The position numbers and the translations under genes were made by a program. 64,000 nucleotides of DNA from Chrysemys picta bellii (Eukaryota): contig NC_088807.1 in NCBI RefSeq assembly GCF_011386835.1, positions 26,164,001 through 26,228,000 of the forward strand, in the 5' to 3' direction. The notes under the pieces were generated by a model. It was given only the letters and a program-made list of their open reading frames with translations, had not been told where the DNA came from and searched no databases. Numbering within the stretch: the first letter of the stretch is position 1; the number at the start of each line of letters is the position of its first letter. Below, piece by piece: positions 154-6,896 of the stretch.

Positions 154-242
154 CTTGAACACCTCCACCTCCTCCAGGGTCAGCTCCTCCAGGACACCTG
201 GGTCCTTGGGCAGCACCACCACTTTCTGCACCGTGCCCCGGT
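154..242 (-). CDS. Semaphorin coding exon 12 (DRGTVQKV...EEVEVFK)
   Basis: cctcag|AC ... AAG|gtgag. Confidence 0.92.
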
Positions 243-3200
243 CTGAGGGGGGAGGGGAGAGAGCACCTGAGATGGGGGAGCCACTGCCCCCCCCCAGGGA
301 CCCAGGCATCCGGGCTCCCATCCCTCCTCCCCCACCCAGGCCAGGGATGGGACTCAGGCGTCCGGGCACCCATCCCTCCTCCCCCACCAAGCCAGAGATG
401 GGACCCAGGCGTCCGGGCTCCCCGCCGGGGATGGGACCCAGGCGTCCGGCATACCGGTACCGAGGAAGAGCACCTCGTAGCGCCCGTCGGCTGCCTGGGC
501 CAGGTCGACGGCCAGCGTGGTGAAGCCATAGGGGAGGCCGGCGCGGACCAGCAGGGGGCGCCGCGGCGCCGGGTACACGGGGTCGTACATCAGCGGGTGC
601 GAGCGCACGAACATCACCAGCTCGTCTGGGAACTCGCGTGTGGAGCCCAGTCCCGGGGTGAAGGCGCCGCCCGGGCACTGTGGGGAAAGAGCGGGAGAAC
701 CCAGGCGTCCGGCCCCGGTCCCAGCCCCACCCCCTCCCAGAGCCGCCGCCCCCCGGCCCCCACCCCCTCCCAGAGCCGGGGAAAGAACCCAGGCGTCCAG
801 CCCCAGCCCCACCTCCTCCCAGAGCTGGGGAGTGAACCCAGTCGTCCGGGCCCCCAGCCCCCACTCCCCTCCCAGAGCCGGGGAAAGAACCCAGGAGTCC
901 TGGCCCCCAGCCCCCCCCTGCTCTAATCACCAGCCCCCACTCCCCTCCCAGAGCCGGGGAAAGAACCTAGGCGTCCGGGCCCCCAGCCCCCACTCACGGC
1001 TCCGGGGCGGGGGTAGGGCACGCGGCCAGTGTAGGGCACCCACTGGTAGCTGCGCCCCTCTTTATGGGCGAAGGGGCCGTTAAACGCGCTGCGGATGGTG
1101 TTCAGGGGGTACACGCAGACGGCCGAGCCCCGGAATACCGACCTGGGGGGGACAGGGGGATTACAGACTGCCCAGCCCCCCTGGGGTCGCCCTGCCCCGT
1201 CCGAGACCCCACCCCCAAATCCCCAGCCCCCCCAATGCCCACCCCAGCCCCCCGACTCACCCCAGGGTGGAGAACAGCCCGTACACATGGGGGTTCTTCT
1301 CGTCCTGAGTCGGCAGCAGGAAAACGTCTCCTGGAAAGGGGGGCGGGGAGGAGATGAATCACATATAGAACCCAGGCGTCCGGGCTCCCTTCCCATCCCC
1401 CACTGCTGTAAGCCACTCCCTGCCCATAGCTGGGGAGAGAACCCAGGCATCCTGGGCCCCCCTCCCATCTGTGACCTTCTTCCACACCCTGTATTCAGCC
1501 CCCCGCCCCTGTGACTGGCTGCACTACTACGGTCCCCGCTCTGACGTCTGCCTGGATGAAAGCTCATAACCCGCTGAACATCAGTGTCCCAGGGAAACAT
1601 GCGTGGTGACCTCAGCCGTGGGGTGAGACGTTCCCTGCCCGCGAACGCGGCTGGGACCTGCCCCAGAGCCAGAGGGAAAACGTCAGTGTTGCCCCGGGGC
1701 CGTCCCCAGACCTGACTTGTCCTGGCTGGCGCAGTCGGGACTAGGAATTTGCGGGCGTTCGGCTACGGCTCAGACTGAGCCCTGGGGAACGTCCCTGCCC
1801 CCCCCGGCCCCCCCCGGCTCACGCAGCTCGTCGAAGAAGGTCTCCACTCCATCCTCGCCCATCACGGAGCAAACCAGCCGGGCCTTCAGGAACGTCGTCC
1901 ACTTATTGACCAGGGCCCGCTGCCCGCCGTCGTCGTTCTGGGAGAGACACAGGGGACAAGGATCAGCTTGCCCGGCACCGAGATGCAGCCGCCTCTGGGG
2001 CGGAGCCCTCGGGAACAGCCGCACAGAATGCTGCATGGGGATGGCCCGCCTGGGGCAGAGATGCAGCCACCTCTGGGGCGGGGCGGCTGGGGAGCAGCTT
2101 GGGACAGGAAGTGAAGAAGATGCCTGTTATTGACTCAAACTGGAGTGGAAGTTTCAAGAGGCCGAACGGGCCCCTCCGAGCTGCAATTCGGCCCGGACAC
2201 CAGGGTTCAATCCCTGAATTTCAGGGGGGGGGGAAGCCAGGCTGGGGAGTTAGCCCCTGACTGCCAGGGGAGAGCGCCCCCTGCCCAGCCCCATGCCCGG
2301 ACCCCCGGCGCCCCCTGCACGACACTCACCAGACAGACCCGGCCGACCCGGGCCAGCACGCCGGGCCCCACGGCGCCCTCCAGCGCCCGCTCGCGGAAGA
2401 AGAAATAGAGCTTGTCGTCGCTGCGCTCGGAGCTGTCCGGCACCACGTGGGCCCGGAGGAAAACGGGGTCTGGGGGGGAGGTGGGGGCGGAGCCAAGGTG
2501 AGTGCAACGCCCGCGTCTGCCACAAGGGGGCATTGCTAACCCAGAGCACCCCCCGGCCCAGCCAGCGCCCCTCACCCCCGACCTGCAGCCCTCCCAGCTC
2601 CCCCGGCGCCCCTCACTCCCGACCCGCAGCCCTCCCAGCTCCCCTGGCGCCCCTCACTCCGGACCCGCAGCCCCCCTGGCCTGGCCCCCCTGGCCCAGCC
2701 ACTGCCCCTCACTCCTGACCTGCAGCCCCCCCGGCCCGTTCCCCCAACACCCTTCACTCCCGGCCCCCCCGTACCATGCAGCCAGCGCGAGTCGTACTGC
2801 TCCGTGCGCACGGCCGGCCGGGGGCCCAGGGTGCGGAAAAGTGCCGCGTCGGTGCCCATGAAATCCACGTGCAGCCCGGCGTAGAGCGTCCCGTCTGCGG
2901 GGCAGGGGGGGCCGTGAGAGGGGGAATGAGACCCCCCCACACACACAGAGCAGCCCCCGCCCCCGCAGAGGGACAGACAGATTCTGGCCCCCCGTAATGA
3001 AGTGGGGGGTTCTCTGGGTTTTGTCACTGGTTTGCACGCCGCGGGGGTGGGACTCGGTGTCCCTGGTTTAACGAGGGGAGAGGAGAGGGAGTTCGTTGGG
3101 ACAGACCCGGAGAAGGAACTTGGGACCCCGGCCGATGGCCTGGAGAACAGAGACCCCAGCGACTGGTGACCCAGAGTCACAGCCGGTTCTGGCCAGTGGG

Positions 3201-6200: not shown

Positions 6201-6896
6201 CTGTGCATTGCACGACTGGATGGTGCGTTGCACGACTGGTCAGCATGTTGCACGACAGGCGGGTGGTCCTGATGTATTGCACAGCTGGATGGTGCATTGC
6301 ACGACTGGTCAGCGTGTTGCACGACAGGCAGGTGGTCTTGATGCATTGCACGGCTGGATGCCGCGTTGCACAGCTGGGTGCCGCGTTGCACGACTGGTCA
6401 GCATCTTGCACGACACAGGAGGCTTGTGGGGGAGGGGAGACTCAGCCCTGCTTGGCATTCTGGGTATTTTAAGCTTTTCTGGGAAAGCCGCTCCCTGCGA
6501 CTGGGTAACCAGATCCCGGAGTCCCCAGCAAGGAGGGGGAGGAGCGGGGGGGCACCTCGGGTACCTCCGCACCACGTGCCCCCTGGTGACCCGGCCAGGA
6601 CTCGGGCTGCCCGTCTGCTCGCACAGACACGCGTGTGCACCAGCATCCAGGAGCAGGCGTGTTCACCTAAACACACATCTCTGCAGGCGACCGCCCACGT
6701 CCTGCACACGTCTATCACCGTGCACGCACGCTTTGCACGCGTGTGTGCATGCCAGCCGGCTGGGAGTGGGCACGGGGCTGTGCCCCCCCTCACCTTTGTA
6801 GGGCAGGTAGATGCGGGGGGTGCTGAGGGAGCTGGACCAGGCCAGGGCACAGGGCAGCACCAAGGCCATCAGCAGCGCGGGCACTGGGGGGGCCAT
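154..6896 (-). CDS. Class 3 semaphorin, SEMA3F/SEMA3C-like, 3'-partial (continues beyond window start)
   Basis: 12 GT-AG exons with consistent phase: 6794-6896, 5161-5321, 4673-4735, 4292-4411, 3790-3883, 2775-2894, 2330-2469, 1823-1937, 1261-1330, 998-1142, 455-677, 154-242. Signal peptide [20 protein letters not shown] with gccATGG Kozak. Sema-domain motifs [80 protein letters not shown]. Confidence 0.93.
455..677 (-). CDS. Semaphorin coding exon 11 (CPGGAFT...EVLFLGT)
   Basis: cacag|TGC ... G|gtatg. Confidence 0.93.
690..990 (-). repeat. Tandem array of CORE-SINE (MIR-like) tRNA-derived head, ~70-bp unit
   Basis: Unit gagtgggggctggtggttagagcaggggggctgggagccaggactcctgggttctctccccggctctgg with A-box-like and B-box-like elements. 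Confidence 0.75.
998..1142 (-). CDS. Semaphorin coding exon 10 (SVFRGSAVC...PYPRPGA)
   Basis: cccccag|G ... GCC|gtgagt. Confidence 0.93.
1261..1330 (-). CDS. Semaphorin coding exon 9 ([23 protein letters not shown])
   Basis: tttccag|GA ... GG|gtgagt; not present as a separate ORF in the track. Confidence 0.9.
1823..1937 (-). CDS. Semaphorin coding exon 8 (NDDGGQ...FFDEL)
   Basis: cccag|AAC ... C|gtgag. Confidence 0.93.
1965..2222 (-). mobile_element. AmnSINE1/DeuSINE-like fragment (GC-shifted)
   Basis: Reverse complement carries ggtgtccgggccgaattgcagctcgg, ttcttcacttcctgtcccaa and ccccagaggtggctgcatctc, matching my recollection of the AmnSINE1 3' half. Confidence 0.55.
2330..2469 (-). CDS. 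Semaphorin coding exon 7 (DPVFL...[10 protein letters not shown]...GRVCL)
   Basis: cccag|AC ... CTG|gtgagt. Confidence 0.92.
2775..2894 (-). CDS. Semaphorin coding exon 6 ([23 protein letters not shown])
   Basis: ccgcag|AC ... G|gtac. Confidence 0.92.
3790..3883 (-). CDS. Semaphorin coding exon 5 (EYLFRM...GKGRCPYDP)
   Basis: ccccag|GAG ... A|gtaag. Confidence 0.92.
3920..4285 (-). repeat. SINE-head tandem array
   Basis: About 5 units, starting right after the semaphorin exon 4 donor. Confidence 0.75.
4292..4411 (-). CDS. Semaphorin coding exon 4 (GECFNYVR...GWRSQ)
   Basis: ECxNYVR and [12 protein letters not shown] motifs, 120 nt. Confidence 0.92.
4673..4735 (-). CDS. Semaphorin coding exon 3 ([21 protein letters not shown])
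   Basis: cctag|ATC ... CGG|gtgag, 63 nt. Confidence 0.88.
4835..5155 (-). repeat. SINE-head tandem array
   Basis: Starts right after the semaphorin exon 2 donor. Confidence 0.75.
5161..5321 (-). CDS. Semaphorin coding exon 2 (ELLQTRTA...NKEPLI)
   Basis: cccag|AG ... ATC|gtaag; SEMA3F-like [20 protein letters not shown]. Confidence 0.92.
5830..6050 (-). repeat. SINE-head tandem array
   Basis: About 3 units in semaphorin intron 1. Confidence 0.7.
6794..6896 (-). CDS. Semaphorin coding exon 1 (signal peptide, ...PRIYLPYK)
   Basis: Acceptor ccatag before 6914, ATG at 6896, donor G|gtgag. Confidence 0.88.

Follow-up and report, generated by a model that had tools for sequence, protein, structure and literature searches.

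Which class 3 semaphorin is encoded at positions 154 to 6896 of a 64,000-nucleotide stretch of the turtle Chrysemys picta bellii (contig NC_088807.1, positions 26,164,001 to 26,228,000; hereafter the window), beside genes that appear to be counterparts of human X-linked ones? Human class 3 semaphorin genes lie at 3p21 and 7q21 only. A first-pass annotation of the window, made from the sequence alone, had taken the gene to be a copy left by whole-genome duplication (an ohnolog), lost in mammals and possibly orthologous to fish sema3h, with a translocated SEMA3F as the competing explanation. Our results place it in an ancient class 3 lineage, here called clade X, that is sister to SEMA3F and separate from it. 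As a whole, we are highly confident that the locus is best explained as a transcribed turtle gene of this eighth ancient class 3 lineage. We also consider it likely, although we hold this less firmly, that at least eight class 3 lineages existed at the start of the jawed vertebrates, that the eighth arose as the duplication sister of SEMA3F on a proto-X paralogon and was kept from sharks to turtles, that mammals, and apparently also birds and crocodilians, lost it, and that zebrafish sema3ga and sema3gb are members of it and not orthologs of SEMA3G.

A transcribed and constrained semaphorin gene

The gene runs on the minus strand as 12 coding exons with an AG at every acceptor, a GT at every donor and consistent phases, and the joined exons form a reading frame of 1443 nucleotides that encodes 481 amino acids with zero stops. 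Translation would start at 6896, where the first in-frame ATG past a stop stands in the context GCCATGG. Because the gene runs past position 1 of the window, only its 5' two thirds lie inside, with the end of the Sema domain, the PSI and Ig domains and the tail outside. The 12 in-frame exons with canonical splice sites that had been proposed for this locus are confirmed, and the proposed description of the gene as intact holds for these 12 exons and first 481 codons only, the rest of the gene lying beyond the start of the window. The exons are as follows (joints are the pairs of window positions brought together in the spliced contigs described below).

6794-6896, minus strand: exon 1, start codon (6894-6896) and signal peptide; GT donor; joint 5321/6794 in contigs of four runs
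5161-5321, minus strand: exon 2, where the Sema domain begins; joints 4735/5161 and 5321/6794
4673-4735, minus strand: exon 3; joints 4411/4673 and 4735/5161
4292-4411, minus strand: exon 4, carrying three of the nine conserved cysteines; joints 3883/4292 and 4411/4673
3790-3883, minus strand: exon 5, with a GTAAGT donor at 3789, one base before a naive reading of the frame; joints 2894/3790 and 3883/4292
2775-2894, minus strand: exon 6; joints 2469/2775 and 2894/3790
2330-2469, minus strand: exon 7; joints 1937/2330 and 2469/2775
1823-1937, minus strand: exon 8; joints 1330/1823 and 1937/2330
1261-1330, minus strand: exon 9; joints 1142/1261 and 1330/1823
998-1142, minus strand: exon 10, Pfam Sema match (E 4.5e-16); joint 1142/1261
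455-677, minus strand: exon 11, Pfam Sema match (E 1.9e-17), query of the exhaustive protein search; gapless counterpart in Malaclemys and Emydura
154-242, minus strand: exon 12, last coding exon in the window, with a GT donor and then an intron running off the window start; gapless turtle counterparts

The semaphorin gene is transcribed and correctly spliced. When spliced contigs from four runs (four studies, one organism) were placed on positions 897 to 6896, one long contig per run skipped nine introns, and in all four studies the nine joints fell at exactly the predicted borders of exons 1 to 10, each reading CT..AC on the plus strand, which is GT..AG for the semaphorin gene. One contig of 2501 nucleotides extends about 1260 nucleotides past exon 10, enough to accommodate exons 11 and 12 plus the roughly 680 coding nucleotides that follow exon 12 in the Malaclemys model. 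The 10/11 and 11/12 junctions lay outside the interval covered by contig placement and are predicted from the gapless exon matches in Malaclemys and Emydura and from the public Malaclemys model.

Read from its translation, exon 1 encodes a putative signal peptide of about 20 residues, with a short n-region, a hydrophobic core and an ALA/WSS cleavage context. Pfam searches on single exons matched the Sema family in exons 10 and 11 and gave no match for the short ones, and the best PDB match of exon 11 was Semaphorin-3A, ahead of classes 4, 6 and 1. A signal peptide and a Sema domain closest to SEMA3F had been claimed at the outset and agree with these results; among human paralogs of the gene, SEMA3F is the nearest and SEMA3C comes next. 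The 481-residue model matches a Malaclemys protein named 'semaphorin-3F-like' (P0166) at 98.3% identity over its full length without a gap, which indicates that our exon model equals that of NCBI. P0166 has 708 amino acids, with Sema, PSI and Ig domains and a short, weakly basic C-terminal tail, and it aligns with mouse Sema3A in the PDB over residues 25 to 565 (E 2e-197). Downstream of the PSI domain P0166 carries an RRVRRQD site, and its tail contains a cysteine. Class 3 semaphorins are characterised by a PSI domain, a single Ig domain, a basic C-terminal tail with furin-type sites and the lack of a transmembrane segment; in Chrysemys the corresponding parts of the protein lie beyond the window.

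The exons are of equal length and gapless in Malaclemys and Emydura, and their lengths have stayed unchanged over about 200 million years of turtle divergence. Over the 481 codons, the ratio of nonsynonymous to synonymous substitution rates (dN/dS) was 0.16 against Malaclemys (synonymous rate, dS, 0.047) and 0.35 against Emydura (dS 0.28). The window protein keeps all nine conserved cysteines. SEMA3F, SEMA3C and non-reptile members of clade X share 152 invariant columns, of which it retains 144 and departs at the other 8. Purifying selection acts on the gene but holds it less tightly than its sister SEMA3F, and in tree distances among turtles clade X evolves 4.5-6 times faster than SEMA3F. The G+C content at third codon positions (GC3) of the window-encoded part is 0.92, and GC-biased substitution likely contributes to the fast rate.

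A transcribed gene in decay, with its constraint relaxed on the way to a loss such as that in mammals, would fit this fast evolution, the dN/dS of up to 0.35 across the deep turtle split, the 8 altered positions that are otherwise invariant and the short, weakly basic tail. We regard such decay as very unlikely, since neither a stop nor a frameshift interrupts the 481 codons here, in Malaclemys or in Emydura, exon lengths are identical across turtles, dN/dS is well under 1, every conserved cysteine is retained and splicing is correct in four studies.

Placement among the class 3 semaphorins

An exhaustive protein search with exon 11, followed by name look-ups, led to turtle proteins called 'semaphorin-3F-like', and the window-encoded part is 81% identical to the squamate proteins of that name, 68-72% identical to the axolotl and coelacanth proteins and zebrafish Sema3ga (68% for zebrafish), 57-62% identical to true SEMA3F, 51% to SEMA3B and 49% to bird SEMA3G. 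Fish SEMA3C was also retrieved with exon 11, and two fish proteins suspected of being sema3h (P0045 and P0046) proved to belong to SEMA3C, sharing about 57-59% identity with the 3F and clade X proteins.

Two maximum-likelihood trees, a quick one of full-length proteins (54 rows, LG+C20) and a careful one on the 481 window-encoded columns, gave the same topology. Clade X, which holds the window gene, all 'semaphorin-3F-like' proteins and the fish 3Ga and 3Gb proteins, received 100/99 in the careful tree (support as ultrafast bootstrap/Shimodaira-Hasegawa-like approximate likelihood ratio test, SH-aLRT) and an SH-aLRT value of 100 at full length. SEMA3F from sharks to mammals formed a clade apart from it (99/98), the two clades grouped together (97/95), and SEMA3C joined them next (100/99). 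Branching inside clade X mirrors the species tree, with sharks, coelacanth and lungfish, ray-finned fish, amphibians, squamates and turtles, and the inclusion of sharks is what one would expect of a clade that arose in the genome duplications of early vertebrates. In the 54-row tree several turtle rows did not pass the composition test, as expected for DNA of about 70% GC.

Many genomes carry both genes. A search with snake SEMA3F found a SEMA3F about 89% identical to it, separate from the window-type gene, in Chrysemys, Gopherus, Emydura and Mauremys, and SEMA3F and clade X occur together in axolotl, newt, caecilian, rattlesnake, coelacanth, lungfish, bichir and zebrafish. The 120 best matches of the turtle ortholog in one search came from turtles, squamates, all three amphibian orders, lungfish, coelacanth, bichir, bowfin, teleosts and sharks, with no mammal, bird or crocodilian among them; a search with SEMA3F readily retrieves mammals, birds and crocodilians. 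The confinement of the human class 3 genes to 3p21 and 7q21 fits a loss of clade X in mammals. The proposal that the gene is a genome-duplication ohnolog is thus supported by a clade that reaches back to sharks, by its position as sister to SEMA3F and by turtles that carry both genes, and the proposed loss in mammals agrees with the 120 best matches.

The names given to fish members of the clade raise another possibility, as they are officially called semaphorin 3Ga and 3Gb, and the twelve zebrafish class 3 genes have been treated as orthologs of the seven mouse genes (PMC8725463), which would make the window gene the reptile ortholog of mammalian SEMA3G. There is little chance of this, given that bird SEMA3G joins SEMA3E (100/99), far from clade X, and that the window-encoded part is closer to SEMA3F than to bird SEMA3G; the shared name looks like a naming collision. 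Orthology to fish sema3h, as raised in the first-pass annotation, has become just as improbable: among the 120 best matches of the turtle ortholog none is named 3H, the fish ones being called 3Ga, 3Gb or 3F-like, zebrafish Sema3ga falls inside clade X, and the teleost a/b pair already explains the teleost duplication. Our statements on sema3h and SEMA3G are the weakest part of this analysis. Least probable of all, to the point that we scarcely entertain it, is that the window gene is the SEMA3F ortholog or a reptile-specific SEMA3F copy moved into this block, for although SEMA3F is its nearest human paralog (57-62% identity) and 'semaphorin-3F-like' its NCBI name, turtles have a distinct SEMA3F, clade X takes in sharks and bony fish, and forcing the reptile clade X proteins together with SEMA3F costs 153 log-likelihood units and is rejected by the approximately unbiased (AU) test (p 1.8e-6), which together with the tree refutes a translocated SEMA3F.

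Several considerations weigh against our overall reading of the locus. That birds and crocodilians lack the gene is judged from the best 120 matches of one search, and GC-rich regions often go unassembled, a possible alternative to loss. SEMA3G is represented in the trees by birds only, and the trees were built without mammalian or turtle SEMA3G, SEMA3A or zebrafish sema3h. The RNA label of the four runs is a guess, although the exact removal of introns argues for RNA. The 3' third of the gene lies beyond the window, and its completeness in Chrysemys is judged from the RNA contigs and from Malaclemys. Finally, the binding and activity predicted below for the turtle protein draw on the family and on orthologs, and with a short, weakly basic tail, fast evolution and skewed composition, its choice of receptor may have drifted.

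Two side observations concern other proteins in these collections. A class 3 lineage named 'semaphorin-3A-like', with entries from newt, the bonefish Albula and a sturgeon entry flagged as contamination (P0110, P0079 and P0060), forms a branch of its own in the tree, away from 3B, 3D, 3E and 3G, and may be a further paralog absent from mammals, or the sema3h lineage. Two public models of clade X are faulty (P0001 and P0004): the sturgeon model repeats the part from exon 11 to the PSI domain twice, and a Platysternon fragment is filed as 'phosphoglycerate kinase'.

Neighbouring genes and repeats

Beyond the semaphorin gene, the window holds the following features.

14147-16120, minus strand: long open reading frame of a NAP/TSPYL-like gene
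22225-23337, minus strand: SREB-family receptor, intact, 370 amino acids
about 38209-39045, minus strand: CBM_21 gene, by family match
41363-43674, minus strand: Bap31 gene, by family match
from 51860, plus strand: peroxisomal-type ABC half-transporter (ABC_membrane_2), by family match
39048-39547 and 46773-46915: runs of N

These neighbours had been described as X-homologous. At the level of families, which were tested here, the genes agree with this, with matches to NAP, SREB-type G protein-coupled receptor, CBM_21, Bap31 and ABC genes. Which paralog each gene represents was drawn from position and from the human map, and we take the candidates to be TSPYL2, GPR173, PPP1R3F, BCAP31 and ABCD1. 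On the human X chromosome, Xp11.22 holds GPR173, TSPYL2 and KDM5C side by side, Xp11.23 holds PPP1R3F and WAS, and Xq28 has PNCK, BCAP31 and ABCD1; their paralogs GPR85, PPP1R3A, BCAP29 and WASL lie near the 7q SEMA3 cluster, and GPR27 and CAMK1 near that on 3p. For the receptor at 22225-23337, the protein atlas could not separate GPR173 from GPR27 or GPR85. Pfam found no NAP domain in the raw open reading frame at 14147-16120; the neighbouring gene carries the NAP annotation in Malaclemys and Emydura. A GC-rich array of roughly 20 copies of a 35-bp unit lies inside this frame (14403-15144).

The order of receptor (7tm_1), NAP gene, semaphorin and a CaMKI-type kinase is annotated both in Malaclemys and in the distant side-necked turtle Emydura, an arrangement consistent with synteny next to TSPYL2 and GPR173. 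The kinase follows the 3' end of the semaphorin (21984-27482 in the Emydura locus L003 and 23149-26535 in the Malaclemys locus L001), its best PDB matches are CaMK1, CaMK1D and CaMK1G, and as a candidate PNCK it would sit just beyond the start of our window. In the lizard Hemicordylus a KDM5-type gene comes after the semaphorin, and zebrafish sema3ga adjoins a WASP-family gene (WH1/PBD/WH2) that is not assignable to WAS or WASL; the bowfin clade X gene showed no neighbour inside 10 kb. At 18877-20656 of the Malaclemys locus L001, a 303-amino-acid model with no Pfam match starts 125 bp past the end of the semaphorin model and may be a mis-split piece of 3' untranslated region or a real small gene.

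The window is also rich in repeats. A unit of 73-76 bp with the core GAGAACCCAGGAGTCCTGGCTCCCAGCCCC occurs 34 times, against 0 expected, at 885-6019 within the semaphorin introns and at 28 more sites up to 56666, mostly as short tandem runs of 2-5 copies in introns and intergenic DNA; the enormous depth of RNA-run contigs on this unit suggests that it is abundant genome-wide. Intron 1 of the semaphorin gene holds a 69-bp tandem repeat (6200-6394, 2.5-2.8 copies) with TTGCACGAC-like sub-units, about 400 bp downstream of exon 1. The gap between the start of the semaphorin gene and the NAP gene is filled by G-rich minisatellite arrays at 7560-8230 and 9070-11520 (units of about 56-132 bp and 64-355 bp, respectively), with a GC content of about 75%, a strong GC skew and spurious open reading frames of up to 1009 amino acids on both strands.

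Two further open reading frames on the plus strand resemble parts of mobile elements. One, at 32687-34063, is intact and encodes 458 amino acids with a SCAN domain and a CCHC zinc knuckle, like a retrotransposon gag; no long pol frame was found after it, and it may be a solo or domesticated gag. The other, at 48857-49588, encodes 243 amino acids and lies in an AT-rich island, where GC content falls to 44% from about 70% in the surrounding DNA. Its sequence resembles the C-terminal dimerisation region of hAT-type transposases, and Pfam gave no match.

Predicted function, significance and known relatives

On the evidence of orthologs and of what is known of the family, the full protein would run from a signal peptide through a Sema propeller, a PSI domain, a furin-type site and an Ig domain to a tail whose cysteine serves dimerisation. 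It would be secreted as a dimer held together by disulfide bonds and be trimmed by furin-type proteases. It would be expected to bind a neuropilin, probably neuropilin-2, together with a class-A plexin, the Sema domains engaging the plexin and the neuropilin holding the complex together. The cytoskeleton would then collapse locally, and axons, neural crest cells or endothelial cells would be repelled or steered. Zebrafish Sema3ga and Sema3gb are reported to bind Nrp2a/b over Nrp1a/b (PMC8725463, citing He et al. 2019), which makes neuropilin-2 the best guess for the turtle protein, an uncertain one because the turtle tail is short and weakly basic.

Gene models of clade X are already public, so that our finding clarifies orthology and does not reveal a new kind of gene. 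NCBI names the gene 'semaphorin-3F-like' in many turtles, squamates and amphibians. The view in the first-pass annotation that this guidance ligand is poorly described is therefore only partly correct: we found nothing in the literature on an amniote member, but NCBI annotates the gene widely and the zebrafish orthologs have been studied functionally. In the searchable literature we found no statement that amniotes keep the clade X lineage and none that sema3ga and sema3gb are not SEMA3G orthologs; a survey of semaphorin evolution (PMC6374515) does not treat class 3 paralogs, and the twelve zebrafish class 3 genes have been said to correspond to the seven mouse genes (PMC8725463).

Our findings suggest that the textbook set of seven class 3 semaphorins is the mammalian count, with an eighth present in turtles, squamates, amphibians, lungfish, coelacanth, sharks and ray-finned fish. 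The gene would add a third, human-X-homologous arm to the SEMA3 paralogy of 3p21 and 7q21 and offer a clear example of how copies from the early vertebrate genome duplications were kept in some lineages and lost in others. If this is true, reptiles and amphibians have a guidance cue without a mammalian counterpart, and zebrafish 'sema3g' results do not model human SEMA3G. Zebrafish knockouts serve to interpret human SEMA3 variants (PMC6370916).

Among its known relatives are zebrafish sema3ga and sema3gb and the genes of the same names in other ray-finned fish, with which the turtle gene shares clade X (100/99), 68% identity over the window-encoded part (zebrafish Sema3ga) and the layout of Sema domain, PSI domain, furin site, Ig domain and tail. 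It differs from them in its faster evolution, its GC3 of 0.92 and its shorter, less basic tail, in which the cysteine lacks flanking tyrosines. Amniote SEMA3G shares the letter G with the fish members, and its bird representatives group with SEMA3E and reach 49% identity. SEMA3C, at about 57-59% identity to the 3F and X proteins, is the next nearest lineage after SEMA3F (clade of X, F and C, 100/99) and yet a clearly separate clade.

The sister lineage, SEMA3F (3p21.31 in human; P0329 in turtle), has the same domain layout and 57-62% identity, and in Chrysemys the two genes are on different chromosome-sized contigs, of 129 Mb (SEMA3F) and 27 Mb (window gene). Its split from clade X predates the divergence of sharks; in turtles SEMA3F evolves 4.5-6 times more slowly than clade X, and it is kept in mammals, birds and crocodilians. 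Mouse Semaphorin-3A, a different paralog of known structure (PDB 1Q47, 4GZ8, 4GZA and 7M0R), has by sequence the same Sema propeller and PSI domain. Sema3A prefers neuropilin-1, whereas fish members of clade X are reported to favour neuropilin-2 (PMC8725463).

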